A stretch of 64,000 nucleotides of DNA from Sphaerodactylus townsendi (lineage: Eukaryota). The stretch lies in the NCBI RefSeq assembly GCF_021028975.2, contig NC_059427.1, positions 108,810,001 to 108,874,000 of the forward strand. Direction: 5' to 3'. The notes under the pieces were generated by a model. It did not search any database. It worked only from the letters and a program-made list of their open reading frames with translations, and was not told where the DNA came from. The position numbers and the translations under genes are program-made. Of this stretch, positions 15,328 to 51,287 are shown piece after piece; positions within the stretch are counted from its first letter, which is position 1; each line of letters opens with the position of its first letter.

Positions 15328-18300
15328 ATTGTGAACACAATGTTAGGCAGGTTTCACAGTAGTAATTAATGTTTTCCAGGTTCACTAAGAATTAAGTGAG
15401 TTGGGGTATGTTTTACTGCTTTATAAACTGGGGGGTTATAAAATGCAACTACAAATACATACAATATCCAAATTTTAAAAATCACCTGAACTCACCGGAT
15501 GGGCTTTGCAAAATCATAGCAAAACCTCTTATTAATGTCTCCTCTTGAACGACAGAAGAAATTTTGTTGTTACCAATTTGTTATAGAACTGATCAGTGAT
15601 GAGGCGCTCCAATGGCCTCCGTAGATGAGTTAAATTTTGTTAAATTATGTCCATGCCATACTATATAGAGGTCTCTGGGAGGGCCAAAATTAATATAATG
15701 GCAGTTTTCTGTGGATCTGAGGTTTTCTCCCCTTGGAGGATATGTGCTTCCCTTATTATTTAAGCGTTTACAAGTATTATTCCACTAAAACAATTTCCAG
15801 TAAAGCTTTGAATTTGCTTGAATGTAACATTTAAGATATGCTTGATTAATTTTTTTCTCCTTATGAAATATAACAGTTCAAGTAATTGTTGCTATTGAAA
15901 CTTCATAAATTTCCTTATTAAACACAAGTCAAAATAAACATACTAAATCAGTTTATGCTCTATTTAGGAATTTGATAATTTTCCAGAAAAAAAAATCAAC
16001 CTTTATTTTTTTAGAAAATCTGTACAACTTATAACAACTAGTCCTGACAACAAAATTTTAAAAAGAGTAGAGTCAAAGAACATTCAAGAACCAGAACAAA
16101 GAGGCTACAGCTAGAGTTCATGTTCTCCTTTTATATTTCTTTTTGACCACTATTTTGAACTATTTCAAACCAGGGGGGAGATGAACACCAAAACAAGAGG
16201 AAGACAGTGTCTTATCTAAGGGTTACCCTTTCAATTTGTAATAACTGAAATAAAGACAATATGGAAATTCCTAAAACATCTGGGCCTCAGGTAACTTAGT
16301 ATCTGGTTTACATCTCCCATTAGCAGCTATAGGTCTTTTATCTCAGCCAATAGCGTCTCATGGTATCACACCACAGAATACGGTGCTGGGGCACGCAATT
16401 TCTGCTCTGGGATGCTTTAGGTTGTTCCTGGGTTGAGCAGAAGTTGGATTAGATGGTCTGTATGGCCCTTACCACTAATGGTTCTGTTATTCTATCTTCC
16501 CATTCATTCAAAACCAGGGGAAACTAAAAGTAAGTTATGCAATGAAGAGCAAATGTATTGAACCTATGGGATTAAAAAAACTGGCCCCATCTGGTGCTCT
16601 CAAGCTACAGAACAATCTCCTCCATGAGCAGTTCTTTTACCATCACAGAGCTTGGAGCTTCAGTTTGCGGCACCAGGTGCATTTCAGATGGATGCACTAG
16701 CTTCAGAAAGTGAAGACCAAATATATATTCAAATCTTACAGTTGTTCAAACAGTTTCCTGCTTGTTTCCAGGGTAGCACTTAAAATGGACATGCTGACAC
16801 CTTTCCTAACCTACTGTGGTATCTAATTTTTCAGGGCCTAGTTTGCACATTACCTGACTAATTCAGGACCAGTAGTGGAATGTTGTTAAGAACACAGACT
16901 CAATCTAATCAAAGAGATCAGGTGCAGTTCTCTGTAACAGAGAGGATTCTAGGACTTTGGGGGATAGGCACCAGTTTTTAATCTCTGCAGCAGAAACTAA
17001 CAACAAAGACAAATATGGCACAAGATCTGCACTATGGTTCTTTTGCCAATTTTTAAATTAGAAATTCAACTCTAAGATAAAGCTAAAACTTCCTCAGCTG
17101 AAGTTTTTAATCTGCAAGAGCTTTAGGTAGCTATTAAGTTGTATTTCATGCATGAGCAAAAGCCAATAAACCATCGTTTTAAATCTTTAATTACAAAACT
17201 GCAGTTTAAGGTTGTTCCCAGCATTCCCAAGTTGTTACAGCCTCTTCCAAAGATTTGCTAATGTGAGAAATGGATGAATGTTGTCCTCTGCACCAGAACA
17301 CACCAGTTTATTACTCCCTAGAAACGCATACAATAAAAGCACTAATGAGTGATATATGTTCAGAGAATTACCTGAAAGAGTCTCATTTAATTCTATCTCT
17401 GAAGCCAAGCAGGTTTCAGACCAAGTCATACCTAGATAGGAACCTGCCTGGAACTTTTAAGAATATTGCTCTGAGTTTGTATGAAGAAGACAGGTTAAGT
17501 AGCAAATACATATGAATTTGTTCACTGCTAAGATGATGTCTCTCCCTCCTTCCTCCCAAATGTTTTAACTGTTGTTTTTATCTTTTGTGCTTATTTTAAA
17601 TGTTGGTTTCACTTCTTGTAATGACATATTTGTGAGTTGGCTTAATGGCTTTTAATGTGCACGTTTTAATTTGTTAGCTGCCTTGATGGGTTTAGAAAGG
17701 AGAATAAAAATCTTGTTAATAAATAAGAATACTCATATCAGATGCTGAAGATGGTTAATTTTACGATGGTCTACACCAACTCCCTCTATCGGAAACTCCA
17801 CAGTAATTTGAGTTCTGCCTACTTCTAAGGAGAATGACTATACTTGTTAAAATTTCTGTAATGGCTAATACCATTAACTAAGATGACATTCTTGTTCTTC
17901 TGCCCTAAAATAAAAAGGAATTCAACAGCCTCAACTGTTTGCTATTGGATTCTATTTCAGAGGCAATTTCTCTTTACACGTAAGAGATATTACTTAGTTT
18001 TGTTATATGCAGTTCACTATTTCTAAATTGCCTTTCTGCCCAAAAGCATCTACTAAAACATACAGTATAAATAAGCTTCTTCAACATTCCACAAGAGACG
18101 TATGCACACAGTGGGGGGAGGATGCAGCTATTCAAGGTGCTACAGAAGCATGATCAATTCATGGTTACCGATCTTCATCAAGTGCTTTGACACAATCAGA
18201 AAAGAAAGGTGCTAAGCAACTACAGCAGCTGTGGACAATCAGAACATGTTCTGGTCATGCAAGGCCTTACATTCTGCATTACCTAGCCAGCCTTGTTGAG

Positions 18301-18463
18301 TTAGGCTAGATCAATAGTAAAGGAGAATACCAAGGTGGGAAAAGAAGCAAGGTCAGACACACACTTGGAGGAGAGCAATCAAGTGGCAGTGCTATGCAGT
18401 TGAAGGAAGCATTAAATAAATGATGCAAGAAATCCAAGCTGCGATGATAAAAAGTTCTGGTAC

Positions 18464-18511
18464 CTGCACGTTGGGATGGAGCGGGAGCAGGGCTTAGAGT
18501 GATCACAATAA
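18464..18511 (-). CDS. MAP2K7: MAP2K7 alternative 48-nt cassette exon 2 (IIVITLSPAPAPSQRA, gamma-type insert)
   Basis: ccag| ... |gtacc; frame-preserving, phase 1-1; peptide matches the recalled mammalian MKK7 gamma insert. Confidence 0.93.
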
Positions 18512-20010
18512 CTGGATTGGGAAAAGGAAGAAAAAAACACACAATAAATCACAACAGAAGCAATCAAGTCATCAAAATGAAAATAAATCATATTCAAATC
18601 AATTCCAGGGCAAGGAGTGGAGGTGGTGAGAAACCAACAAAGGGGACAGACAAGGTGAAAATGAGATGCATCAAACAGTGGGATCAATTCCACAGAAGTC
18701 ATGTCCTTACTGCGCCTAATGTGACAGATGCCACTGTGGCCCTCCTCTCCATGCAAATTCTAGGGAACCTGCTCCATTATGCTCTGGATGGAAAAATTCA
18801 TGTGGATGGCAGTGCCAATTCTCTAGCACCTCACCAACACACTGGTTCACCACTTCATAGCCATAGTCAAGGACTAAAAACATTTAAAATACTTGGAGGC
18901 CAGTTCCAGTTTTTGGGAGTCAGCACCAAATTTTTAAGCACCCAGATTGTAGATTCCATATTTTACATTCTAACGTTCGATTTTATGCGCGCCGCTAATT
19001 TGCACAAAGACGAAGTAAGCATTTCCAAACTGGTGTCTAGGAAACCTGTTAGCTGCTGCGCTGATCTTCTTATGCAGTCTCCAACATAAAACTCATAGCC
19101 CGGACAGGCCATTCAGAACTTACTTAACAGCAATGTCAAAGAATTTATGCTCCATTTCAAAATGTTGTCTTAGGTTCCATATGCCTAACCACAGATTGCT
19201 CAGACCTGTGACACTCACCTAATAGCTTAAGACCCACATGTGACTGACATGCCACCTATGGCTTGTCTGAACACCACAAACATGGTGCCCACCCACATTT
19301 CAGGAAAGCAGGCAAGGTCACTGCCCAGTAAGGTTTGAAGTTTGCATCATGGAACAGCCATTGCTGTCGAAACAAGAAGATGAGTAAGTTGTGAGGCTCC
19401 TTGAGGGAAGGGTCTTGTGCCCACCCTTCCCTGCAGCCTCTGCACTCTCATCCCAACATCCCTAGGCATGCTGGCTACAGAGAAGACAAAATAAAACCAC
19501 CATACAGGAAAAGAGCAAGATGGCCACAGTAGGGGGTAGTGGTTTTACTCTTGCTTATCCATGGCCAGCTGCCTCTCCTCATGGCACTTTGGCAATCTCA
19601 TCCTTTTACCTGAGCTGCTGTGCCCCGTGCCAGCAAAAGAGCAACACAACAGAGGAAGTACAGGGTGCCTAGGTTCAGCAGTGGTATCACAAGATGCCAC
19701 TGGGTTCTCAGGGTGCTATGGTGATTTAAAACATTAGTTACATATTGCGTATTAATGGTTATATTATGTGTGTGATTGGTGCGGCAGTGCACAGGACACA
19801 CAGTATCATACAACTCTTTTGGTTGATGGCAATTATAAATGTGGCTCTCAGTGATCCACAGAATAGGCACCACTGGCTCAGACAGTTTTTCTCCTTCTCA
19901 AAAACTTATCCACATTTATCCAACTTCCAGTTAATCAACATTTCTACCTTTGTGGGGATCAATGCTTGTTACCCTAGGAAAGTGCTTGTTTGGGAATAAT
20001 CTCTCCATTT

Positions 20011-20232
20011 GGGTGCTGTGTGGTTTCCAGGCTGTATGGCCGTGTTCTAGCAGCATTCTCTCCTGACGTTTCGCCTGCATCTGTGGCTGGCATCTTCAGA
20101 GGATCCTCTGAAGATGCCAGCCACAGACACAGGCGAAACGTCAGGCATGCTTTCACTAGAACTGCTCCTCCCCAACCCGGAGCTCTACAACTTCACCCAA
20201 GTGATTCCGGCCATGAAAGCCTTCGACAATAC
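20011..20232. mobile_element. Penelope-like insert; 84-bp palindrome encoding minimal hammerhead motifs on both strands
   Basis: 13-bp TSD AATCTCTCCATTT (19998-20010, 20233-20245); palindrome 20062-20145 centred on GGATCC. Confidence 0.85.
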
Positions 20233-23116
20233 AATCTCTCCATTTTCTCTCTTTGAAAACCTCTCCATAAAACAGGCTTCTGACCCTTTAAGTCACGCTC
20301 ATAACTCATTCTGTTGAATTTTCACACTGCCAAGTTCCTTTTGAAAACTGGTATCAACAATGGTTTAATCTACATATACTAATTTTCTGACTATTTTTAA
20401 TTTACCCACCTAGCTTAAGCTTTCACAGAAGTATGAGTGAATGGCATGAAGGCAAACTGGCAAGATTACCGACCCCCAGAAACATCATACTCTGATACAG
20501 CGCTTGAGGGAAACGTTGCAAATGGCATGTCGTTCAGACCAGCATATCAGTAAAGCGCCAGTATCTCTTCAGAATAAGTCAGCATTGGGGGCATAATATT
20601 GCCAGTGAACCTGTGTGCAAGATCTTAGCCCACGGAACAGCCGGTTTTTTGAAAGTCCACTGCTATCACTAATTTTTCTCTTACCTGGTCCCCTGAGTGA
20701 TCTATTTCCACTATCATTACACTCTTGTGATTTAAAACTACAACACATGGAGAACAGAGAGGAAAGAATCCCTTTAAACTAATGGTATTTTAATTTCACT
20801 AATATGGCTAACAGCAAAACTAGGAACAACAATTTTCTAAGCATTTTTTTCTCACGACATCATTTTATACACCAGTCATATCTTATTATCACTCTCCCCT
20901 TAATTGTCTTGGAAAGATGAACATGTTGCTATTTTTGAAGTTACCTCTGGTTATTTTCTGCCACCAGCCTATCACACTGGAACTTCTGTCATAACAAATT
21001 TATTTTAAAAAAAATGTAACTGATTTTGGTGCAACAAGCTTCCAAAAAAGTGTCCGCAGGCCCAGAATCTAGCATACTACTTAAGAATTCTAAAGCAACG
21101 AGACAATAAACAAAACAGATGTAGTAAAGCATGGAAATATGCAAGAAAATGGAAATCCTCACTCTTGAGGATTAAACAGAATCCCAAGAGACTAAGTAGT
21201 ATCTTCTGTTAGGCAAGCCTTTTAAAGACGAGCTGTCTCTTATACACCAGCTTTACCTATTCCGTTTCTTTTGTTAGTGGGATCACTGTAGCTACCACAT
21301 CCCAATAGAAGGCATAATCTAAAACACAACATTAATTCTTTGCCTTCATTCATTTTGTAACATTTGAAAAACTGACAAAGCAGGTGACAGTTTTATCTGA
21401 TACACTTTTATGGACTATCAGAGCAGCTCACCAAAGCAGCTGCAAATCAGTGACCACCAATGTGGACTCATTTAAGGGAATCGGTTACAATGTTTCTTCT
21501 AGATGGATCCCTAAGAATATTAAGCTAGATTTTTGCCCCAACGCAAGAGGTCCTACCCTATTCTACCTTAGCACATGTATCTCAGTATGAAAAATAAAAA
21601 TTAAAAATAGGCAACGCAACAATGCAGTAAACAAAAGGAAGTGTATTACTTGAACTTCTCAGGCAGTTGCCACAGAACTAGAGGCATGCTTGGACAGCCA
21701 TTTTAAACTCCAGCACTGGAAACTGTACTATTAAATACTGCAACAGACATGATAGCAAACTTTTGGATAAGATTAGCAACATCTAAATAAACATATCCTT
21801 GAAAATATGTTGTGACTACTACTGTCTGTACAGAAATCATTACCTAAGAATATTGATCACTTTATGTGAAAATATTCATGCTATACATTCCAAGTAAAAA
21901 CTGGTCTTGTAAGCATTTCTCTTATTCTAAAAAGGAACAAATTTCATGGGAGTTTTCAGTGCTTCCCAAAAGTTTTCAGTGCTTCCCATAAGATCCATCT
22001 TTTCCACTTAGTTTTTGCCATGTGAGAAATTTACAGAATTTGAGCCAATGAGAAATATCATTATCCTCATAATCAGCATGAAAAATTAGCATATCTTCTT
22101 GACAACTTCCCCTCTACCCCCACAAATAGAGTTTTCTCTCTTTATATACAGATTCAGCAATTACTGCCTCTGGTCAAATATGCTTTCTTGGAACCGGATT
22201 TCAGAATCTCTAAAATCTAAGCAATTCCATAGTGTTGTTCTCAAGGTGCCTAATTTTATTGGAAAATACTTTAAATGACTAGTTTTAAATGACTGGTTTA
22301 AGACTAATGAATACGTATCAATGTTAAACTTCTACTTGACTCACATTATTCATTATTAAAGTAGCTTTCATCATCATAACATTGACAGTGATGCTTTAGT
22401 AATAGAACTGTATAAGCTGTGAATTTCAACCAGACAATTCCACAAACATGACATTTTCATTTGCTTTTCCAAGATACACCCAGTACTGAGTGACAATTGC
22501 AGAAAAATACCATAAGGAGACAGTCAACAACACATTTAAACTCTTTTACAGCACTCTCTTAGTCAAGCAAATATCAGCTTTGTGATTGGATTCTTTTCTT
22601 CCTCCAAAAACTATCACTTGCCATGCAACTGCCAAAAGTAATTCCTCATCCCTTACATAGCTTTTAAAAGTAAAGAAATGGACCTCCAAAGTCATATTAT
22701 CAACTTTCAGATGCTGGAAAGGAACACAAACGTGATGTGTGAGGGACACAGTGAGGACATAGGTGTTCTTTATCAACAGCTGCACAGTCAAGACAAATAC
22801 ACCACTGACATGTTACTTTAGGCACAATAAAGCAGGGATGTGCCTCTCCCATGCATCTCACTTGTCCACTACCCCTTCTCATTTGGAAAATACCAGACAC
22901 ACACAAATGCTGGTTACCACAAGAGCACATGGGAGAGCCAGAGGTGGTATTCAGCTCATAAAGCCAAATTCTAAACCGGGACTTAACCCAAGCTCAGAAT
23001 CCCAGTGTGCAGGAAGAAACCTAACTCTTGATTAACCCATGTGCCTAAATTCATACATCATGGGGAATCAGAGTCTTTGCCCTGTTTTGCTAAAGCTAGC
23101 AATGGTGTGTTAGTTG

Positions 23117-23216
23117 GGTGCTGTGTGGTTTCCGGGCTGTATGGCCGTGTTCTAGCAGCATTCTCTCCTGACGTTTCGCCTGCATCTGTGGCTGGCATCT
23201 TCAGAGGATCTGAATT
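23117..23216 (-). mobile_element. Penelope-like terminal fragment with intact minimal hammerhead motif
   Basis: Near-identical to 20011-20105; 11-bp TSD TGTGTTAGTTG. Confidence 0.85.
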
Positions 23217-24438
23217 TGTGTTAGTTGTTTCCCTGGTAAATTATTAGAGAGCTGTACAGCAGCTCCAAGACAGAAAGATTGTCTAAACCTCTGGTTTAAT
23301 TTGATACACAAAGGCCCAATATTTGAGGCTTGCCTTAATAACCATCCCAAAACTAAGGGAAGAAGTATTTAGAAACAAATACCTCCAAAGCACCAGTCCA
23401 CCAGCTCCAAACTCAGGAAATGAGTGGGAGATGGAACTATCAATGTTGCTATTAGAGAGGCTGTCGGGGAAATGCCACTGAAGTTCTTGCCCCTTCTCCA
23501 GAGCCTGATGCCAGGAAAGAACAGCCACTTATGCCACTTTCATTTCTGTTGTATCTTTGCAGCTGCTACAGCTCCCTTCCCAGCCAGCAATGGTGATGAA
23601 CACTCATCTGTCTCACTTACATTCTTCCCAACCAGCACCTTCTGGTAGTCAATGACAGAAATGTTCCTGTCTACCAGATGATGCTTCTGCTCTGATATGC
23701 CTGGGTTAGAAAGGGCAGAGGTACAGCTGGAGCAGAAAGGTGCTGGAAAGGAGATGAAAAGGTGGGAACCACAAACATGGGCATGCTTTTAGAAGTAGAA
23801 AGATCCATAGCATGGTGGGTTGATATGTTAACCTTTCATTATACCTATTTTAGGAATTATTTGGTTTTAATACAGTAGCATATATTTGTTGTCTAAAAAA
23901 CACCTTTAGATTAAAAGGTATGTACAAATATGTGTATTGGGGGAAGAAATATGTTAGTGCTTCCGGTGATGTCTATGTAAAGAAAGCCCTTAGCAGAAAT
24001 CTTACATAACTCTGGAATAGGGTATCATTAATATGCTGATAACACCCATCTCTGTATCTCGCTATCCAAATCTCCTGGAGATGCAGTAGAGATGCTGAAC
24101 CACTGCCTGGTCACTATGATTAAATGGTTAAAGGAGACTTAATCTCGTAAACTTAATCTTGATACAGAAGCAATGCCAGCTGCAAAGACCTAAACAAACA
24201 TTGTGTTTCCTATTTTTGAGGGAATTCAGCTGACCCTTGCTGATTTGCTTAAGAGTTATACTGGTTATATTGGAACAAGCACTACTGCTGTAGATGCAAT
24301 TTAGGGCAGCTTCAAAAATGCTTTCTTCCAACTTTGTCAAGCCTGAAAGATAGCCTCTAGCTTTGACTCAACTGATTTAGCTACCAGGAATCTATACCAT
24401 TTTAGCACAAAGATTAGATTATTGTAATGCGTTGTAAT

Positions 24439-24648
24439 GTATCCTGACCTGGACAGCCTCAGGCTAACCTGAACTCATCAGATTTCAGAAGCTTAGCCGA
24501 ATCAGCCCTGGTTAGAATTTGGATGGGCCTTCTCCAAGGAATACTAGGGTTGTAATATGGAGGAAGGCAATGGCAAGTCACCTCCAAATGTCTCTTGCCC
24601 TGAAAACCCTATGGGGTCACCCTAAGTCAGCTGTGATTTGGTGGCACA
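24439..24648 (+). mobile_element. 5S rRNA-derived SINE; second copy on minus at ~57787-57985
   Basis: Head resembles 5S (gatttcagaagcttag...cctggttagaatttggatggg) followed by ggcaatggcaa..cacctc and aaaaccctatggggtc tail. Confidence 0.65.
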
Positions 24649-26907
24649 CTCATACACATAATGCATTCTAAATGGGACTACCCTTGAAACGAACCCCAGT
24701 ATCTCCAGCTGGTACAAAATGTCACAGCTTGGTTATTATCAGGAGCCAGATGGGACATGCACATTACAACCATTCCACTGGCTGCCCATCAATTCAATTC
24801 AGGATACTATCACGTTCAAAGCCCTGCATGGCATTAGACACTCAAGTTTTTTGCAGGGGCCACCCATGCAAACATGCAAGATTGACAACTGCACATAGCC
24901 CCCACCTAGTGCAATGGCCTTCCTGAGATGGTCAGGAAGATTCTAAGCCTTCTGCAAACTATGTTAAATGGAGTTGTTCAGGAGAGCTGTCCTATGAAGA
25001 TAATAGAGCTAAACTTTATCAAAATGATTTAAAAATGTGCTTTGGAAAGGGGCTGTGGATTATGCCATAGTGTATAGAATAGGTTAACATATCACTGCAC
25101 ATATTAATCTGTTGTAATTCCATTATTTTCTACTGATGTAATAACATTTTTTCATTTTATCACACTCTATATCATGCCTAATAAGCTATTCAGATTCCAT
25201 TCATCCTAATAAATTGCTCATTTGATGTCCCCTTATACTGCTTGTATTGACCAACACTGTGCTTATTAGACGTCTCTTTGTATAAACTGTTACTAATTTA
25301 TGCTGTATAATCTGCTTCAGGTTTCAGAAAGGTGGATTATAAATACAGTTTTTAAAAAAGTAATTCCTGAATTTAAATTCCTACATATCCTTCGGTCAAT
25401 GTGCAATAAGGATACAAGATTCCAGATTAGAAACAGGATCTAAAGATAAACAACACAAACAATTCTTTTAACCCAATAGTTTAGGACACTGGCTGTTTCA
25501 AAAGCACATTTTTCCTTACCTACCTGTGTACCCGTGTCAGCACCAAAACACTGAGCAACAAATATATAAAATATTAATATCACTGGCAGCACACTTTCAT
25601 TTTGTAACCCGTGGTGCAATCTACACTGCAATTTCAACATCTGCCTCCCATACTCATAATCCAAAACAAGTTAACCAAAAACAAAACACAACCCAAAGTG
25701 AATCCAGAATACAGCACATCAACATATATACAACCCACCACTATGAGAGATTAATCTTACCTTTGCCCATGCTTATCTGAAACCATAAGAACTGAAACAG
25801 GCAGTGCAGAACCTGATCTTTGTTCTACACAAGTTACTCAGCATGAACTCAAATATCAACTTTACTGCATGTGAATGGCTTCTGAATAACCTGGTCCCAC
25901 ATCACACTGGTAATGTGTGTAAAGAAGACGAATGAGGACGCAAGGTGGTGTAGCTATTTACCAGTACACTGGAATAAGAAGCAAGCACTATCATCCCATC
26001 TACTTATATGGGTCCTATTGACATAAATTACTGGAAGAGTGTAGGGCCAAACTATGTTGAAATGTCTCCACGCTTCAGATGTCATGCCTCAATTATTATT
26101 ATTTTTTAAACAGCAAGGAATTGATGAGCTGTATGTTTTCATTCTATTAGCTGCCACTAAGAATGAAACCTTCGCCTTTTCTGGTAATGTCACAGATCCC
26201 TCTAAATACCACCCTGGCAACACAGGTGTGCATACAAGCAGGATTTGCTTGTTCACATTAAAGGAATATACACAAGTAATAAGGTTCCCTTGACCCCAAA
26301 GTAAACAAGTAAACACTGTCTGCATAGAGTCCAGTGTGTATACAGAACTTTGTGTTGTGTCTAAATGCCAATTACCATAGTCTGAGATTTGTCATAACTG
26401 AAGAATTATGGTAAACTATAATCAACATGTCAGATTACTGATTTGTGAGAAAGTATGTCAATTTTAAATTCAGTTTTTATTTAAATAAATCACAATTCTA
26501 TCCCCCATGAGTCCTGTAAATTACTGATCCACCACCACTTTGTTGACGTATGAGCAGTTACATCATCCCAAGGAATGCCTGAAGAACATACATGGATTAC
26601 CTTACATGAGCTGCATTATAGCTAACAGGTGCATGGAAATCTCAGAAAACAATAAGTACAGGGGAGAAATGTATGCCAGGAGGCAGTGTCAGCTAGATTA
26701 CCCTGCAGATGCAAGAAACATGTCAGCCCTTTGTTTTGAAAACAGGTCAAGAAAATAATTATTTTAAGCGTGCTGCAAATTCAATGACCAAAAAATAGTA
26801 TTCTCAGTAAGAGGTTGCCTGATATGTGCACACAGTGGATCTTCCTTGTATTTAGGTTAGAAACTAGCTCACTGACAACCTCCACAAAATATACTATGCA
26901 CCCTCTC

Positions 26908-27210
26908 CAAGGGTGACCAACCTATGGTGCTCCAGATGTTCATGGATTATTCATGATGTTCATGTTTGTTTATCTATTTATCTATCTATCTAGTTATTTA
27001 TTTATGTATACATTATATTTATTAGCTGCCCTCCCCCAGAGGGTTTAAGGCAGCATACAGCACAGTAAGTACACAATTACAATAATACGATATTAAAACC
27101 CACAACAAAACAACAATACAACATTTTAATATTCCAATTGGCCATGCTGGCAGGGGCTGATGGGAATTGTAGTCCATGAACATCTGAAGCGCCATAGGTT
27201 GGCCACCCCT
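26908..27210. mobile_element. Palindromic hAT MITE interrupted by an AT-rich retroelement tail
   Basis: Two halves matching the 43578-43725 family. Confidence 0.65.
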
Positions 27211-28119
27211 ATGACTCTGATCCAAAGATGCATTTGGGGAAACTTCTAAGCACACAAGCAAGAATGCTCACACCTTTCCTCTCCACTTAATGACAACTAC
27301 AACCCAAATGTGATGCAGAAGTAGAACAGTACACAATGGGGAAAAACGGCACACTTCAAGTTGCTGAACGTGGTGGGACTTACACTGGGAGAACAGTGCC
27401 AAATCCACCATTTCTTTAGTACAAATGCATCACAGCCATATTTGTATACAAACAAAGCTCCCCTTTCGCCTGCTAAAACATACAGCAACTATGAGCTAGA
27501 TAATTCCGTCATTAAAAACAAAATAAACGCCACTCTCTCCAAGAATTTTAGAATGAGAAGCAGGGTCCAAGAATGTCATCAGTTTGTAATCTCAACACAC
27601 GCAGTTTTTCAGGATAGTCCATACACAGTATCCCCAGGTTTTCAAGGTTCTTATGGCCGCGTCCTCTGTTGTACCCCATTCATTCCACACTCAATCTTTA
27701 AATCTCCTCGTAAAAACCTCAGACATCCTATTTCACTACTGATTGCAACTCATCCTATACCATTCTGTCTCCTACAAATCCTGCCTTTTCAACGTCTCCC
27801 TTGTTCCAACCTCTTTCCCTTCGGTGGTCTTTTTTTTTAACCTCTCTCGAGTCCTCTCCTTATACCAATGTACAGTCGCCAGCTTCCACTATTCTAGGAC
27901 CCTTCCAAAACAAGCATTTCTTAATCCTCCTCCTGGAATTTCCTGCTCTCTATTATCAGCCCACCTCAACCCCTCACTTTCCTAGAAATGCTTCACTTTC
28001 CACCTTCTCGGCCCCTTCTACGGCATCTCCCCTCCCCCAAGCCCGCTGGTTTCAGGGCACCTTCCCAGACAGGCCCTTGTCATCCAAGCAGGAATCGCTT
28101 CCCCGTCACCCTCCCTTAC

Positions 28120-28243
28120 TAGGTCGCGCCCGGGCTGGACTGATCTCCAAGTTGAGGTCGATGCGCCTCCGGGCCTCTCTGTTCTCCTGTTTCAGTTTGG
28201 CCTCCAAGCGGGATAGTTTCTGCTCCAACGAGGACGCCGCCAT
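28120..28243 (-). CDS. MAP2K7: MAP2K7 coding exon 1 (MAASSLEQKLSRLEAKLKQENREARRRIDLNLEISPARARP)
   Basis: ATG at 28243 in AAGATGG context; 124 nt to the A|gtaag donor; MKK7 N-terminus with the D1 site. Confidence 0.97.
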
Positions 28244-28415
28244 CTTCCCCCGCCCCCCCGGAGCCGCTGACGCCGCAGCGCAGCCAGAATACACAAACAC
28301 TTCAGTGCGCAGGCGCTGCATGAACCGTTCAGGCCACCGTATTTCCTCCTCCGTCCTGTTTATCCAATATTGTACTTCTCTCGCCTCACCGCTTTTTCTC
28401 TCACGCATGCGCAGC

Positions 28416-33659: not shown

Positions 33660-34464
33660 AGCTGACATCAGAGGGAATGTTTTTCATGTGAGATGGCTGT
33701 GTGTATAACAGTCTTCTCAGCAATTAGTCTACTCATCTTCAATAGAGTGCACAGGCCTTTTCTGTAAGAGGGGAGGGGGACCTGTTGGTTTTCTTGTGCC
33801 CCAGACAGATGAATCGAAGTCTTGATTACTGGTGGAACAGCAATCTAACAATTGCCCTTAGCAACAAGAGTTTTTCTCCAATCAATCAAGGATCTGTGGA
33901 GTGAGCCACAGGTGCTATTGTTTTGCTCACAGAACCACATAGACACTTTAATTGTCCAGATGGTAGAGGGATAAAGTACAGGAAATTAAGATGCGGATAG
34001 GGATTTTATAATTTCCTTAAGGTGAAAAAAGCATTGAGAAGGATTTGCATCTTGCTGTGAAATAAAAGAGGACCTAAGGACCAAGTCAGCTGATTATCTC
34101 CTCAGGACTCAGTGCTGTGCTAGAAATTTGGTGACTTCATTTTGATCTGAGACTGCCAGTTCTAAAAGCATCAAGAATCTTGTCTAAGGGGCTGAAGACT
34201 ACTATTTGTGCAGGATCTCTGGTCTTTCATCTTGCAGGAGTTGCCAGAGAGATTCAGCTAGTAATGTTAGAAAATGTGATATGGCACATACTGGACCCTT
34301 TTCTGAAAGCATAGCTGGTTAATAGGCTCCACCTTGACCAATGAACATTGCTAAAGGTGTTGCTTAGTTAGTGCTCTCATATCACTGGTAGCTTTCATTC
34401 TGGGATCATTTCAAGCTTCGATACTTCTACTTTCAGAAGAAGCTCTCTTACCATAGAGGTACAA
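33660..34464 (-). pseudogene. Decayed LRR-coding remnant of the LRRC8D-like gene (presumably now 3' UTR)
   Basis: Manual translation across frames: KLEMIPE*KLP, MRALTKQHL*QCSLVKVEP, LNLSGN, SLQPLR, EEIIS, FFTLRKL*, IPLPSGQL, KGNC*, NIPSDV; colinear with LRRC8 LRRs. Confidence 0.85.
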
Positions 34465-35604
34465 CTATGTCTGCTGCTGCAACTTATCGTCAAGACTACA
34501 ATTCAGCAGGCCACTCTCTCTTATAGCAGAGAGAAAGATAGTAAACCGCCATGAATACAATTGGTCACACTGATCAGCCATATGAAGCAAGAAAGCAAAA
34601 TCATTATACACATCTGGAATGTTACAAATATCTCTCTTCTCTTGCACTTGTTTAAAGGAATACTTCTGCAGTGGCTGCAACATTAGCCACAAAAGTGGGC
34701 AAGTTCCCACCACTCCATAGAGGACTACCAAGAATAGGTAAGTAGCCATCAGCTTTTGCAGAATAAAAGCCAAGCTGTGGGTACAGAGAAAAGTAGAGTA
34801 GCCAGTGAGGTTTTCTGTTTCTGGCCAGCAAATATGCTTGAATGAGACGGCACCTACAAAGATGGAGGTATAGCACAGCACAGTTAGGATCTCTGCAACT
34901 TTGAAAATTGTCTGTCCAGTATAGACCATGTAAATCAAGTTAGCACTTTCAGTATGTGTCCTAAATCTGCATATTTTTTCAAAGAGTGCCCGTGCCTGTT
35001 CTCTGTCCTTCCAGTCTAGAATAGGAGAGAATGAAGGAGAAATGAATTGTTCTTGACACATCCCAATATCAAAGGGTTTCGACAGGCCAAGGAATTGCTG
35101 GCTGGCCATTTCTGAGAGAGCTTTAGTAGTCCAAGGTGACTCAAAGCATTTCCTGAGGATGGACAAGAAGTGTTCAATCTTTGATGAGGTTTTAGGATAC
35201 CTGAACCAGAAGTTATTACTTGCCATTAAGAGCAGTGAGTTGATAAGTGTCAGGTAAGGAAAATACTTGGAGAACCAAGGCAATGCTTTCTGATAGCAGA
35301 TATGACTAATGTACAAATACTGCTGGTAGTCAAGGTTGACTGAGCGGCCACTGTTTACGGCAGAAAATTCACCACTGGTAGCATGATCTGTAGTTTCAGG
35401 GATAGTCAGAGGAGCGATGGTTTCATTTGGCTTGTTATTCAGTGGCAAGCAGGTCATCTGATCAACAGATATTAACAGAGTGCCTGAGAGAAGAGAGACC
35501 ATCAACATCAGTAGCACAAAGAAGTCCATTAGGACATCCCACCAAGGCTTTAGAGTCTGGAACCGGCTGACATTGAAGAAGGTCACTTCTGTCAAGGTAA
35601 ACAT
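34465..35604 (-). CDS. LRRC8D-like paralog, transmembrane (pannexin-like) domain only, 379 aa, no LRR domain
   Basis: [62 protein letters not shown]: LRRC8 family with LRRC8D-type residues. Intact polypyrimidine tract/AG acceptor 2 nt before the ATG. Confidence 0.85.
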   Translation of the reverse strand: MFTLTEVTFFNVSRFQTLKPWWDVLMDFFVLLMLMVSLLSGTLLISVDQMTCLPLNNKPNETIAPLTIPETTDHATSGEFSAVNSGRSVNLDYQQYLYISHICYQKALPWFSKYFPYLTLINSLLLMASNNFWFRYPKTSSKIEHFLSILRKCFESPWTTKALSEMASQQFLGLSKPFDIGMCQEQFISPSFSPILDWKDREQARALFEKICRFRTHTESANLIYMVYTGQTIFKVAEILTVLCYTSIFVGAVSFKHICWPETENLTGYSTFLCTHSLAFILQKLMATYLFLVVLYGVVGTCPLLWLMLQPLQKYSFKQVQEKRDICNIPDVYNDFAFLLHMADQCDQLYSWRFTIFLSAIRESGLLNCSLDDKLQQQT

Positions 35605-35947
35605 AGCTAGGAAAAAAAGAAAAAATAGAGGTCAGTAAAATCATTGGCTGTTGCATGGTGAAGCTAATGGAATAATTGGTGGTTCTACCTTTGAACCTGA
35701 GAGTTGTTCAGAGAGAGAGGTCTGCAGCAAATAAAAAACCAGAATTCTAAAACATTGTTCAGAGTCTTAGGAATAAGTTGAGCAGATACTAGAAAGGCGT
35801 TTTTTCCCCTCAACTTTCTCGTTACAAATGAATACATGCTCCATTCTTTCAGGAGAATAGTTGAGGAAAATAGATGAAGAGGAACAGGAGAGATCCACTT
35901 TCTTATTCATACGCAAAGGCTCATTCAGGAGGTCTGACTGTTGGTTG

Positions 35948-36410
35948 TGTAGTCATGACCGCGAGGTCAGCGCAAGAACGAGACGAGACGCGGTGATAAC
36001 ATCTGGTGGAGAGCGCCAGCAGCGGGAGCGCGGGTGTCCGTGTTCCTAGCGACTCTGCCGCGTGCTGGTTCCTGGCACCTTTTATTATGATTCTAGCGGG
36101 GGCGTGTAGAAGGGCGGAACGGGGGGGAAATCCGGGAGAGCGGGAGACTGAGAGATCATCATGTGATGCATGATCTCACCTGGCTGCTACGTGCGGAGAG
36201 GAGCATCAGCGTCTGGGCCTAATCCTCACCTGGGGGCAAGACCATTGTCCCTTTGTCTGGGACGCCCGGTGGTTGTGAGCCAGGTGGTTCATGACCCGTG
36301 ACTCATCGGGGGGTGAGGAGTGGGGGAGCGGCGCGACCAGAAGACCGTAGGAGCACCGGTGTGCCAGCGCTCTACTTACGGCGCTGCTGGGTCAGCAGCT
36401 CATCCCTACA
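35948..36410 (-). mobile_element. Solo LTR (463 bp)
   Basis: TGTAG...CTACA ends; 5-bp TSD GGTTG; minus-strand AATAAAAGG; CpGs retained. Confidence 0.85.
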
Positions 36411-37791
36411 GGTTGTCCAACAGAAAACCTGTCCCATCCAGTTTTGGGAGAACAAGTGTCATTTCCAGCTTTTGTTATCACAGAATGAGGATACAGAATA
36501 TCTTTATTCACTGAGCTGCAAGGTTCTATTTATTTGGATAGGGTTGTCATGGAATCTAATGAAAATCAGGCAGAGTATGTAGAATGTATGCATTGTTATA
36601 GGTCTTGTTTCCTTATTTTACATAAATCAGCTTGCATTAGTTATGTCATATTAAGTCTCCTTATAATTTTCTGCAACAAATCCAGTCAGGCGTTTTTCCA
36701 TCTCACTCTCCTAATTTGCAGTTAGTGTCCTTGAGAAATGTATTCAGCTAGCATAAACTCAAAGATACACAAGTCACACTGGCATATGTAAAAACTATTT
36801 TCTAAACTGAAATCTGAACAAACTATTACTGTCAATCCTTGACCTGTTCCAGAATTTTGTCTGTGTGATGGACATTGCATGCAGTTTTGCTCCATTCTAA
36901 GCTTATTGATTTTAGTGGGTTTTGACAGGAGAAAATCCAGCGTAAGCTTTTGTGAACGGAAGCCCACTTAGGTAAAGCAAACATTCAGTCTATAGACTCA
37001 AAATGGATTGATGTAATTGTGTGAAGAAGCCATATCTGAAGAGGGGGCAGTTTGTTCCTCCAATTCTATTTATATCATGCTCCCAGGGTCCCCAATACAT
37101 CTAAAACGTATTTGTCCAGTTAGCAATAGAAAGACAAAATATACTTTAAAAGTTGTACTTCTGTCTTAAAGTTACATCACAGAGATGCTAACCAAGTCCA
37201 AGTTGATCAGGACATGTATATTTGTCTCAATGGAGCAAACAACATTTAATAAGGGCCATTGCAGATCAGGGAAAGAGCAAAGTTCTTGTGCAACAGTTAT
37301 GATCCAATTGGGGCTTTGCATAACTTTTTAAAAATTTGCAAGGAGCTCATTCAAAAATTCCCAGTTTCTGGAGTATTTTATTCTTGTGCTAGGAGTGTTT
37401 AGATGACTATAAAAACACTCCCATATCTCATAGGCTTTTCTTATAAGATCCCTATAGTGAAAGGAGGCAGAGAGATAAAAAATGGCCCAGTTCCAGATCG
37501 AACATAATATACTGGGGCAGATATAAACTGAGAGTGGGGAAAAGTCTTGTTGCCATGAGCTTCCACTGAGTAGATAAATGCCCAGATGAACAGTGGAGAA
37601 ATGGATAGATTAAGTTATTTGTTCCTCCTTCCTGTTATGAGAGGAGTTGAATCCCAGTCATTGTAATGGCAGCCTAAAGCTTTAGTCCCAGTTCTCTTTC
37701 TGCCATGGCCAACTTCAGAACACAAGTCTAACTCAGCTACTGGTATATAAGTAGAGATATGCTTTTTTCCCTTGTTTGCCATCAACTAGCT

Positions 37792-46518: not shown

Positions 46519-48771
46519 TCATTCCTCCTCCAACTTCTCTCTGATTTCTAAAGGCAATGACTCGTAGACTGTGCTTTCTATCTCCAGACCAGAACGTTTG
46601 AGGGCACGGCACATGCCAATTTCCCGGGGCAGGAATTCAAGTTGGTTCCCTTTCAGCTCTAGTGTGGTCAGCAAAACCAGACTGCCCACACGTTGAGAGA
46701 GGCGGTGCAGTTTGTTGTATCCTGCTTTGAGAGTCTTGAGTTTCTTGCAGAAAAAGAGTTCATCAGGCAGTGCCTCCAAGGAATTGTGAGAAATGGCAAA
46801 ATGCTGAAGGTTATATAGGGCTCCCATCCCAGGAGGGATGACCCGGATGTTATTGTTGGAAAGATCCAGATAACGCAGTTTATTGCACTGGAATAGTTGG
46901 TTAGGGAGGTTCTCAATGTTGTTATGGCTGAGGTCAAGGCGCTCTAAAGTCTTGAGTTTGCGAATATGATCAGGGATGGTGGTGATGTGGTTGCACCAAA
47001 GTTTGAGAGATGTTAGCTTGCGGCAGTGCTGGAAACTGATGATCTCCTCAATGGAATGTAGTTGGTTGTCTTTAAGATCCAACTCCTGCAGATTCACTAG
47101 GCTGAAGACGGCATGGGGGATGCGTTCCAGATTGCAGTTGATCAGCTGTACTTCTTGCACAGAGAAGAGCTTCTTCAGATTATTGAGAGTCACTAGTTTA
47201 GTCCCATCATTACGGATTATTAGCTTCTGCAGATGACTGGCAACATCAGTCACACTGGGGGGCAATTTTGAAATGTTGCTATGCAGCATTAGAGTCTTCA
47301 GGTTCTTTAGCTCACGCAGGTTTTCCAGAGTTCCTGTCCGGCCTAGCTCCTGGCTGAAAAGCCCTGAGATGTGTAACTCTTCCAGACTTCTCAAGTTGTA
47401 AGTCCACAGTGGTATATCTTTGATCTCATCAAACTTTACATTCATAACCTTCAACTGTTCACGGAGGAATATAAGACCAGTAAAAGGCAGTTTCACAGGA
47501 CAGTTGATCAGTGAAAGCTCTTGAAGATTGACCAACTGAGTTACTGATGTTGGGAATGTAACATCTTTGAGGAGCTCCAGTTTCAGAGACTCCACCTCTG
47601 TCAGTTCAAAGACAGTGTCAGGTAACCCAGGTAGCATGAAGAGGTGAAGTTCCAACCGGCCATGAGGATTCTTCTGCAACTTCTGCCGTAGTTTCTCTAC
47701 CATCCACTCATGGTTGAGGTTGAGCTGTGTGAGCTTGCATTCGCTGACTTCTGAGAGGAAAACAGCAAACCGCTTGGAGTAAAGGGAATCATACTGGTCT
47801 ATAAGATGGAGCATGAAAGCAAAGTCATTCTTGACATCAGGAATGTCACTGATGCCAGTCTCCTCACGTGCATACTTGAAGGAATACTCTTTAAGTGGCC
47901 GATGGAACAGCCAGTAAAGAGTATAGAGACAGGTCATGCCATATAATCCAAGAAAGCAGATGTAGCAGATGGCTAGCTTAGAGAACAGATGTGCTTTGGT
48001 GTGATTACAGCAGAAATGGTCATAGCCTGTCATGTCTTCCATCTTGATACTGCATGGCACTATAAAGCTAATATTGTGAACTAGTGCAGCATTGTAGGCA
48101 GTGATGATTAAGAACTTGCAGACTTTGAGAATGGTTTGGCGAATGTACATGGTATAAAGGATGTCTCCCTTTTCCACATGGAGCCGGAACTTCTTCACTT
48201 TTTCAAAGAGAGCCTTGGCCTGTTCCCCTTCCTTTTTATCCAGGAGGCTAATGGGAGTGGAGGACTCTGCAACCTTCTTATCTATAATGGATCCCGATAC
48301 GGGGTTAAACTCAACAGATTCACTGGGAGCACTACTTTTCCTTCTCCGATCCCTCTTTGCTGGGCTTGCACTGTCCTGGTTTTCCACAGAGACTTCTGAG
48401 ATGGCCCTAGTAGTCCAAGGTGAATCAAAGCACTTGCTCAGGATGGAGATGAAGTGTTCAATCTTGGAACTGGTACCAGGAAATTTGAACCAAAAAGAAG
48501 CACACACCATAAAGATGAGGGTGTGGATGACGACCAGGTAGGGAAAGTATTTGGCATACCAATGGAGGGCTGTCTCATAGCACATCTGATTGATGTAGTT
48601 ATATTGTTGTAGGTCCAGGTTGTTTTGTAATCCACTCATTTCCTTATAGGTGGGGGACTCAGTTGTCTCGGAAGCGTTTATTATCTTGGTGAAATCTTCA
48701 CAAGTGGCATCAGCAAAGGGTGTACCACTAGGGACATGGTTTGGAAGACAAATAATCTTGTCTTGTGTTAC
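46519..48771 (-). CDS. LRRC8E: LRRC8E large coding exon ([10 protein letters not shown] ... [10 protein letters not shown]), VRAC subunit with full LRR domain
   Basis: gacag|GTA acceptor; 2253 nt open. With the upstream exon it gives 796 aa. C-terminal EEE and position next to MAP2K7 identify E rather than C. Confidence 0.95.
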
Positions 48772-51149
48772 CTGTCATATGTGGGAGAAGAGAAGAGAGA
48801 GAGCATGATACATCCCAGAATACAAGACAGCAAAGTAATTTACATAAGTCTGACTTCCAGTTTGCTTTAAACTAACTACACCTGAGCAGAATGTGGTGGG
48901 GATGACACAGAAGCCAGGCTGGCCCTAGACCAAATGGTGCCTTCGGCAAGGAATGTTTTTAAAGTCCTCCTTCCTTTTGATCGCATTCTAAATAGCTTGT
49001 TTTTATTGCATTAGAAGCCCACTTTGTGACTCTAATATGTGATTTGAGTACATGATTTTTCCCTGTCATATAAGTAAACAGATTTGCACCTTAGCATCTA
49101 TAAATCTGTACTAATTCATGCCACGATACAAGTACAAATAGTGCCACGATACAAACAAGTAGTGGACCTGCATGGACTTGTGGGGCATCTAACTTTCCTT
49201 TCCACCTTTTCCTGCTTTCTTCTCTCCTTCCCACCTACCATCAACCTATTTTATGTGCCCTATCTTCAGTATTCCCTCATCTCTTTGTCAACAGCTTGTA
49301 CTCAGGAAAACTGTGGCTAAGTTGCATGGTGGCAGCTGCCAGGCAGGCCCAGTTATAGAGTAGGGAAGCTGCAAGGACTTGCTGGGAGAATCTCACTGTA
49401 TCCCCCTCCAGACACTATTTCTTTCTATCTGGCAGTCACCATGCCCTTCCTTTTCCCTGCTTCCTTCTCACTGTTCTAACCATAAACCATCCTACCTTTT
49501 ATCTGCTCCCAATCTCCAAAAATATTATTACATGATTCATATTACACCTTCATCTACAATGGGGACCCAAAGCATTTTATATAATTCTTTCCTCAATTTT
49601 ATCCTCACAACAATTCTATGAAGTAGGTTTGGTTGGAAATGTGTGAGCTTTCACAACAGAGTGATTATTCAAACCTGATTCTTTCAGTTCCCAGTGTTAA
49701 ATTTTGACCACTGCAGCACACTGGCTTTTGTAAGGTAGCTACTGTTGAACTGTAGCAAGCAGCTGGACCTAGGTGAGTCATGCTAGTTGTATAGTATCAA
49801 GTTGTCTGGTGGTTGATGGCAGGCTTGGCTCCAGCAAGTTTTTGACTGAAAGGCCACAAAAGCCCTGGAATGGCCCCCGCCCCATCCGTCCATATTTTAC
49901 TGACAGAAACCAGTGCTTGAAGGCTGGCAATATTGTGTGGTTGTCTAGCAACAACCACTGAGGATACTCTTTTCTTAAAACTACAGGTTTTCTTAAAACT
50001 ACTGCTTCATTTCCTTTCTTAAAACTACTGCTTCTATTATTTTGGAAATGATTAATTCACTGTTGTTGTTATAGTGTTTTGGTTTTTTTAGGAATTCAGT
50101 TTGTTTTTCAAACTTGGGGCTTTCTTCAGGTTTGTAGAAAGATCTAACTTGTCTGTTCATGGATCCAATCTGTGGAAATATATAGAGTTTTCTTTAACTT
50201 AAAGAATAAGTTTAGTTGTAAAGAATAACTGAAATGTACTAACATTGGAGATTTGTTCAGGGTGCCAGCCCTGGTTGAACTAATATTATCCCCAACTATA
50301 ATAAACACTGTAATGAACTGTTTGTAGTATTTGTTTCAGCTTTCAGTAGATAACGGAGTAGGACGCTTCCCCTAATGCTGGCACTTCAGATAATGGAGTT
50401 GTGGCTCCTACAGTGGCTGTTCTGCAGTGTTGTTCTAATCTATTTTCTATTACTCATTTACAGATGGGAGGAAAGTCTTGTTGCTAAGAGACAAGTGACC
50501 GGCCAGGTTCTTCCACGTGGGAGACCAAACTCTCTCCAGCTAAACCTGAGAGACCCAGTAACTATGTTGTGGTAAGGAATCCCATCTCCCCCACCTTGAC
50601 TGAGAAGAATTTCCCTCAGCTGGTCATCCCTGCAAAGAGCCAACAGTATGCATGTTATTAAATAGCTCCAGCAAAGTACACGGTGTTTTTCAGAGTACAA
50701 GTCCCTGCCTCCAGGATCTTACAGTTCAGAATTTAACATAAGGGGACAACAAAGGAAACGAAGGGGATAGTTGTTCTCCCACTGGAAGAATATGCATTAA
50801 TTCCCCCTACACTTACGTGAGCTTCATTTCAATGAAGTTTTGTGGAAGAGGTGGATTTTGAGGAGGGATCTGAAGGAACTGAGAGGGGTGGCATCATGCA
50901 GATATTCTGAAATATACATCCAGGCTTAAGGAACAGCAAGGAAGAAAGGGCAGCACTGTTTTAGGGAGCAGGTGGCCTTTGGATGGCTGGGGATGGTGGA
51001 GGAGTAAAAGTTATGTGCATGGTTTTCCCCACACTTGCCCAGCATGTCCCCAACTTTGGCTACCAATAAAAATTAGTGCAGTATAACTCCAGAGTGTCAT
51101 TAACAATGCAGTCCTCTTGAGGTCTTGTGTAGTGTTCTCCCATACTCAC

Positions 51150-51287
51150 TTGCAGAGTACAGCCAAAAACACCTATCATCAGCATGGCAATTGTGATGTA
51201 TTCAGCCAGAACATCCCACCAGGGCTTGAGAACTTTGAAAGCAGGCTGCTGGTCTGTGAATTGCTTGAATTCAGCTACCGGGATCAT
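51150..51287 (-). CDS. LRRC8E: LRRC8E first coding exon ([46 protein letters not shown])
   Basis: 138 nt, phase-0 |gtgagt donor; cag acceptor 5 nt upstream of the ATG. Confidence 0.96.

Follow-up and report, generated by a model that had tools for sequence, protein, structure and literature searches.

The LRRC8 family is named after its LRR domain, which has a key place in current models of how VRAC is gated. Rearrangement of the LRRs accompanies activation, and nanobodies that bind the LRRs inhibit or potentiate the channel. When C or D subunits are present, the tightly paired LRRs of LRRC8A become looser, as seen for accessory subunits in structures of LRRC8A/D channels, and the LRRs are destabilised on activation (PMC13586245). 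Truncation of the LRR domain of LRRC8A results in reduced currents or retention (PMC9399500), and removal of the LRRs from LRRC8C causes a dominant multisystem disease in humans (PMC11729881).

The end point of the truncation is important in LRRC8C. Human LRRC8C truncated at L400 (+6 aa) folds, oligomerises and co-purifies with LRRC8A at hexamer size, and it produces large DCPIB-sensitive currents already in isotonic solution, i.e. a constitutively active VRAC (PMC11729881). A construct 21 residues shorter than the L400 truncation did not fold, and one ending at residue 419 assembled and gave very low isotonic currents and little response to swelling (PMC11729881).

The DNA analysed here, referred to as the window, is a stretch of 64,000 nucleotides from Sphaerodactylus townsendi. 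Between LRRC8E and MAP2K7 it contains a gene for an LRRC8D-like channel domain that ends where the LRRs would begin. The gene and its neighbours are as follows.

34465..35604, minus strand: LRR-less LRRC8D-like gene, single coding exon (ORF, PF12534, LRRC8D/A/C structures, omega)
46519..51287, minus strand: LRRC8E, the upstream neighbour, with full architecture (Pfam, tblastn)
17741..28341, minus strand: MAP2K7, the downstream neighbour (blastn to the Elgaria locus)

An uninterrupted ORF of 379 codons runs on the minus strand from the ATG at 35604 to the TAG at 34465-34467. It covers the N-terminal coil, four TM helices, both extracellular loops and the cytosolic helices. The product matched PF12534 (Pannexin_like, the TM region of LRRC8) with an E value of 3.5e-105 (352 bits, Pfam), covering the profile in two stretches. 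This was the sole Pfam match, and no LRR family was found in the 379-aa product even at E<=1. The closest solved structures were those of LRRC8D (E about 1e-111), followed by LRRC8A and LRRC8C. These results bore out the original prediction of a 379-codon, LRRC8D-like channel ORF. A 458-aa PDB chain, 9T5P_E, was considered as a truncated construct and rejected, as it is the modelled part of full-length LRRC8D.

Residue 373 of the window protein was aligned opposite residue 453-454 in LRRC8D and residue 408 in LRRC8C. This placed the C-terminus at LRRC8C residue ~414, at the boundary between the pore and LRR domains, in agreement with the prediction that the stop lies where the LRR domain begins. 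Tyr93 of the window protein aligned with Phe143 of LRRC8D, a residue of the extracellular constriction. We take Arg103 of LRRC8A to occupy the same position.

An AF2 monomer based on an alignment of 30 sequences was of low confidence (mean pLDDT 56), and its secondary-structure pattern alone was used. The helices of this low-confidence model agreed with the topology of LRRC8 pore domains (TM1-4 and the cytosolic helices). The eponymous feature of LRRC8 proteins, a C-terminal domain of about 15-17 LRRs, was absent. Judged from its sequence, the window gene is an LRRC8 member by descent, and not by the eponymous architecture.

LRR-less orthologs were found throughout Squamata. When the search was limited to proteins of about this length, it gave products of 359-432 aa, 65-86% identical to the window protein, in Elgaria, Podarcis, Pogona, Phrynocephalus, Anolis sagrei, Hemicordylus, Sceloporus, Rhineura (an amphisbaenian), Lerista, Python and Varanus, and in four Logan contigs. 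An ORF of the same kind lies in Crotalus, inside a gene model fused to LRRC8E. The LRR-less ORF was spread over 12 or more lineages of squamates (among them Iguania, Anguimorpha, snakes, Lacertoidea, Scincoidea and that of the window itself), and the truncated product appeared in independent assemblies of at least 10 species.

All squamate orthologs ended within about 50 codons of the window TAG, and their C-termini corresponded to LRRC8C residues about 410-470. Two related genomes, L001 and L008, carried a TAG homologous in position to that of the window; L001 has its own stop four codons earlier. The stops in Toxicofera lay 10-50 codons later. Variation of the stop among lineages fits a tail that is no longer under constraint.

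Past the stop, two remnants of the lost half were located.

34273..34464, minus strand: remnant of the first repeats and of the linker that joined them to the pore (tblastn with the lungfish D-like protein P0049)
33671..33874, minus strand: faint C-terminal LRR remnant, displaced by deletions (tblastn with P0228 residues 763-808, E 0.29; HMM)

The tblastn alignment of P0049 passed through the stop and continued for ~64 further codons in the old frame, to about 34273. Turtle LRRC8D gave a weak linked HSP at 34383-34439. For the downstream remnant, an HMM was built on the LRR domains of 13 full-length D-like proteins. It scored 4 bits at 33671-33874, and collinear faint matches were obtained in Rhineura (6 bits) and in L008 (E 2e-4), while none of 300 shuffled frames in the control exceeded 3 bits. 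As an LRR fossil, the downstream match is credible for the clade, and weak for the window taken alone.

No LRR-coding stretch was found between the stop and MAP2K7, either in tblastn searches that used LRRC8C, D, E and D-like queries (E<=10) or by the dedicated D-like LRR HMM. These results bear on the possibility of an annotation or assembly artefact, in which the LRRs lie in a further exon or the stop is erroneous. LRRC8A, C and E do have a second coding exon, and one pipeline fused the ORF to LRRC8E in Crotalus. The barren interval down to MAP2K7, the TAG common to two relatives and the same truncated product in so many assemblies argue against an artefact, which we consider extremely improbable. 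An assembly error at the stop, a concern raised with the original prediction, was excluded by the common TAG, by the truncation of all squamate orthologs and by the sequence itself, which has no N across the whole window.

To place the gene within the family, we compared it with full-length relatives. The closest full-length proteins were annotated "LRRC8D-like" and belonged to lungfish, coelacanth, sharks and rays, Polypterus, sturgeon, gar, salamander and caecilians. In a tree built with IQ-TREE on the pore-domain columns, the squamate sequences were monophyletic (support 100/100) and sister to the turtle D-like genes (98/98). Support was 100/99 for tetrapod D-like, 99/94 for the D-like clade and 100/100 for D plus D-like. 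The D-like clade was separate from the canonical LRRC8D of the same species, and all its members other than squamates were full length. A quick tree on the full-length rows agreed with the pore-domain tree.

At the syntenic locus of the turtle Chelydra there is an intact ORF of 791 aa with LRRs, and D-like models of 772-792 aa are present in seven other turtle species. Since full-length relatives occur in fishes, amphibians and most turtles, the loss of the LRRs is a squamate (or lepidosaur) trait. The protein search returned no D-like orthologs of mammals, birds, crocodilians, frogs or tuatara between the turtle and the amphibian hits. This suggests that the paralog was lost in these groups.

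The neighbourhood of the gene was compared likewise. In the window, LRRC8E has a short exon 1 at about 51111-51287 and a large exon at about 46519-48792 that encodes PF12534 and the LRRs. The MAP2K7 exons matched were 28022-28341 and 17741-18786, and the Elgaria counterpart is a Pkinase protein of 437 aa. The order LRRC8E, D-like gene and Pkinase gene (~437 aa) is annotated in Elgaria too, and the full order of LRRC8E, D-like gene and MAP2K7 is likewise present in the turtle Caretta. At the Anolis sagrei locus the downstream kinase gene alone was seen next to the LRR-less gene.

Together, the tree and the synteny indicate that the window gene belongs, as its squamate ortholog, to an ancient sixth paralog, and is not a new squamate duplicate. 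The original prediction of an additional LRRC8 member was upheld in that the LRRs were lost and the gene was kept (omega, synteny, orthologs and the LRR trace).

The squamate gene evolved several times faster than canonical LRRC8D. The stem branch lengths were 0.67 for turtles and 0.68 for squamates. As the turtle genes on this equally long stem are full length, the fast evolution is not attributable to the domain loss. Canonical LRRC8D was retained in Rhineura, Hemicordylus and Podarcis.

Several other features of the locus and the clade were observed. The tandem of LRRC8E and the D-like gene parallels that of LRRC8C and LRRC8D. LRRC8E in the window has an intron of about 2.3 kb after approximately the first 59 codons; the D-like gene, as LRRC8D, has a single-exon CDS. 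In lungfish, a single 1.97-Gb contig carries two D-like copies, P0049 and P0222, which are 72% identical. Sharks and rays have two sets of proteins named "LRRC8D-like", one of 825-836 aa in the D-like clade and the other of 838-856 aa in the canonical D clade.

Comparison of the Caretta caretta locus (L007 10001-12600) with that of Chelydra serpentina (L011 5001-7373) revealed four 1-nt indels in Caretta. All four fell within the LRR half; the pore half was free of them, and the product is a pore-only protein of 459 aa. The Eretmochelys D-like model is flagged LOW QUALITY, and that of Chelonia is shortened. The cheloniid sea turtles may represent a second, recent loss of the LRRs, or the onset of decay of the whole gene.

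The constraint on the pore ORF was estimated from a codon alignment with nine squamate ortholog DNAs, using the method of Nei and Gojobori (NG86) with bootstrap. Over the 45 pairs the dN/dS ratio (omega) stayed within 0.11-0.27 (bootstrap upper bounds <=0.41), and dS was 0.24-1.5. A value near 1, which would have spoken against the original prediction, was excluded. When neutral substitution was simulated on the window ORF, the frame stayed open in 1% of the replicates at d=0.1 and in none at d>=0.2.

The CDS was 88-89% identical to those of the two closest relatives, with almost no indels. On the other hand, the flanks (300 bases upstream, and 260 bases downstream in what was the LRR region) were 69-83% identical and 15-25% gapped. 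The low omega, the ORF remaining open at these divergences and the scarcity of indels in the CDS ruled out a neutral remnant. By these sequence comparisons, the squamate pore ORF was shown to be kept under purifying selection.

Conservation was uneven along the protein. Within squamates, the TM and cytosolic helices were 85-95% conserved, and the first extracellular loop 60%. The tail past residue 361 was 57% conserved in squamates versus 84% in the full-length relatives. The best conserved part ended at about residue 375, equivalent to LRRC8C ~410, and the tails beyond it were unconserved and variable in length. Among 180 sites that are near-invariant in 30 full-length D and D-like proteins, 124 were kept in the squamate gene. 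At seven such sites a new residue was fixed across squamates (H122N, K135R, I242V, E318K, Y346C, K352W and W375L).

One ortholog departed from this pattern. In L008 (Logan SRR13336339, a single contig) a 5-bp deletion, TCTAC, was found between TAC repeats at about codon 271 (contig positions about 1596-1605, equivalent to about 34790 in the window), and it shifted the frame. Past the deletion, the old frame was open and conserved up to the shared TAG. The deletion may be real, heterozygous or an assembly artefact. The ORF was intact in all the other orthologs for which DNA was compared.

This deletion, together with the dead LRR half and the rate of evolution several times that of canonical LRRC8D, is what might be expected of a pseudogene remnant whose frame is open by coincidence, or of a gene that is now being lost. 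A pseudogene would have an omega of about 1 and disabling mutations in the orthologs. Instead, omega was low in every pair, at least 12 lineages kept the ORF open despite divergences at which stops invariably arise in neutral sequence, and the CDS was almost devoid of indels between flanks full of them. We regard a pseudogene as very improbable.

The original prediction also included a splice acceptor just before the ATG, which is seen in the window as follows.

35605..35630, minus strand: 3' splice site of the LRR-less gene (read from sequence)

The pyrimidine tract spans 35630-35609 and the AG lies at 35608-35607, followed by 2 nt and the ATG at 35604-35602. The predicted acceptor held up well, as the same arrangement was kept in all the loci compared, which included nine from squamates and two from turtles.

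In the Elgaria gene model, an upstream exon ends in ...CTTCCAG|GTGAGC (donor GTGAGC) and is joined in frame to the coding exon. Similar exon ends are present 1.1-1.5 kb upstream of the coding exon in Python and Rhineura. The same junction, "...LPAV-MF", recurs in the gene models of Hemicordylus and Crotalus. A mini-exon with the pattern ...LP(A)|GTRAG was present upstream in Elgaria, Rhineura and Python, and was not found in the window. The conserved acceptor and the exon junctions in the gene models lend indirect support to a putative spliced transcript. That the LRR-less gene is transcribed and translated is suggested by the signatures of selection and by these gene models of other groups.

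Two further observations concern the upstream region. In the Crotalus horridus model (P0224, 1209 aa), LRRC8E is fused to the pore-only ORF via a short linker exon ending in ...DWLPAV, which is similar to the mini-exon that lies upstream in the models for Elgaria, Hemicordylus and Python. The fusion may be either a false annotation or a hint of read-through transcription from LRRC8E. About 460 bases upstream of the gene in the window (35948-36411, minus strand) were absent from L001, which is otherwise collinear, the blocks of the alignment being 36757-36411 and 35948-34204. This stretch is probably a lineage-specific insertion.

With regard to function, we lean, by somewhat more than even chances, towards a functional pore-only VRAC subunit, the squamate ortholog of LRRC8D-like, that would co-assemble with LRRC8A and alter its gating. 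The LRR-coding 3' half was disabled in the squamate stem and then decayed in place, with the pore half staying under purifying selection. The protein would fold as a normal LRRC8 pore domain and join the obligatory LRRC8A in hexameric channels. There it would contribute the D-type aromatic residue at the constriction (Tyr93), D-type permeation and no LRR domain.

In current structural models the channel is held closed by contacts between LRR domains, so that heteromers with a pore-only subunit should gate differently. The effect would most likely be higher basal activity or easier opening, as with the human LRRC8C truncation. Because that truncation assembles with LRRC8A, co-assembly with LRRC8A as a subunit without the LRR brake would be the likeliest mode of action, by analogy. 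A complex prediction for the window protein with a fish LRRC8A pore domain (P0021 residues 1-412) scored 0.03, a value that weighs neither way on binding.

The direction of the effect is uncertain. By homology to LRRC8C the window protein ends at ~414 and its orthologs at ~410-470, and these natural C-termini bracket residue 419, at which truncated LRRC8C assembles yet hardly conducts (PMC11729881). Lower currents or retention were also the outcome of LRR truncations in LRRC8A (PMC9399500). These results would fit a silent or dominant-negative subunit that binds or competes for LRRC8A, forms poorly conducting channels and tunes VRAC down where it is expressed. However, conservation of the squamate protein ends at ~410, and with the tails unconserved and variable, the effective protein would be nearer the activating LRRC8C truncation than the 419 construct. 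The experimental truncation data, moreover, came from one paralog, LRRC8C, only. We consider a dominant-negative role unlikely.

The protein might otherwise act independently of LRRC8A, as a homomeric large-pore channel of the pannexin type. LRRC8 pore domains on their own self-oligomerise, as do LRRC8C or LRRC8D as homomers (PMC11729881; PMC13586245). The architecture is that of pannexins, and the cytosolic helices carry the seven replacements fixed in squamates, which hints at a new constraint. Against this, in mammalian cells the non-A subunits need LRRC8A for reaching the plasma membrane and for currents (PMC9399500), and the sequence indicated no independent trafficking signal. A stand-alone channel appears doubtful, with rather low odds.

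Returning to the pore-only subunit beside LRRC8A, a more far-reaching version may be proposed, which we offer as tentative and as clearly short of an even chance. The squamate gene would supply a "brake-less" VRAC subunit that replaces an LRR-bearing partner beside LRRC8A, giving channels for organic osmolytes that are constitutively or easily opened in particular tissues. The cheloniid sea turtles may be on the same path independently, as their frameshifts are confined to the LRR half. If true, this would be a physiological use of a configuration that causes dominant multisystem disease in humans.

The gene models are already in RefSeq as "LRRC8D-like". No description of a natural LRR-less LRRC8 or of a sixth paralog was found in the literature searched, which was incomplete for subscription journals, and there the name "LRRC8D-like" appeared in fish expression work only. 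What is new here is a natural, conserved loss of the defining, gating domain in a known channel family. The retention of a pore-only subunit under purifying selection throughout Squamata shows that in vivo the pore domain performs a selectable function even by itself. The squamate orthologs constitute a natural, evolutionarily tuned set of truncations with different end points, usable for asking what the LRRs of accessory subunits add to gating, assembly and trafficking. The comparison further highlights a sixth LRRC8 paralog of vertebrates, for which no counterpart was found in mammals.

Compared with LRRC8D and the full-length LRRC8D-like paralog, the window gene has a homologous pore domain (47-58% identity) and likewise a single large coding exon. 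The proteins have in common Cys52/103/259/274 and the WWDV, FWF.YPKTSSK and NDFAFLLH motifs, all invariant, and an aromatic residue at the extracellular constriction. Unlike them, the window protein lacks the entire LRR domain (about 400 aa), and several cytosolic residues invariant in the family are replaced. The first extracellular and first intracellular loops are longer in LRRC8D than in the window protein.

The pannexins (PANX1-3) have the same architecture, a four-TM large-pore subunit without LRRs. However, the window gene is not a pannexin by descent. PF12534 was its only Pfam match, no pannexin or innexin profile being found at E<=1, and the tree placed it inside LRRC8D-like, not with PANX. 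The likeness is secondary, by way of domain loss.

The C-terminal truncations of LRRC8A (the agammaglobulinemia translocation and the ebouriffe mouse) also lose part or all of the LRR domain. They hit the obligatory A subunit and lead to its retention and to loss of current (PMC9399500), whereas the squamate case concerns an accessory-type subunit with canonical LRRC8D kept.

Human LRRC8C(trunc), c.1197dup (Quinodoz et al., EMBO J 2024/25, PMC11729881), is also pore-only and terminates no more than about 10-15 residues from this pore-LRR boundary. Its gain of function is highly sensitive to where exactly the protein ends, and the squamate proteins run on slightly further. The human form is a de novo pathogenic heterozygous allele of C; the squamate gene, on the other hand, has been fixed and conserved for approximately the age of Squamata.
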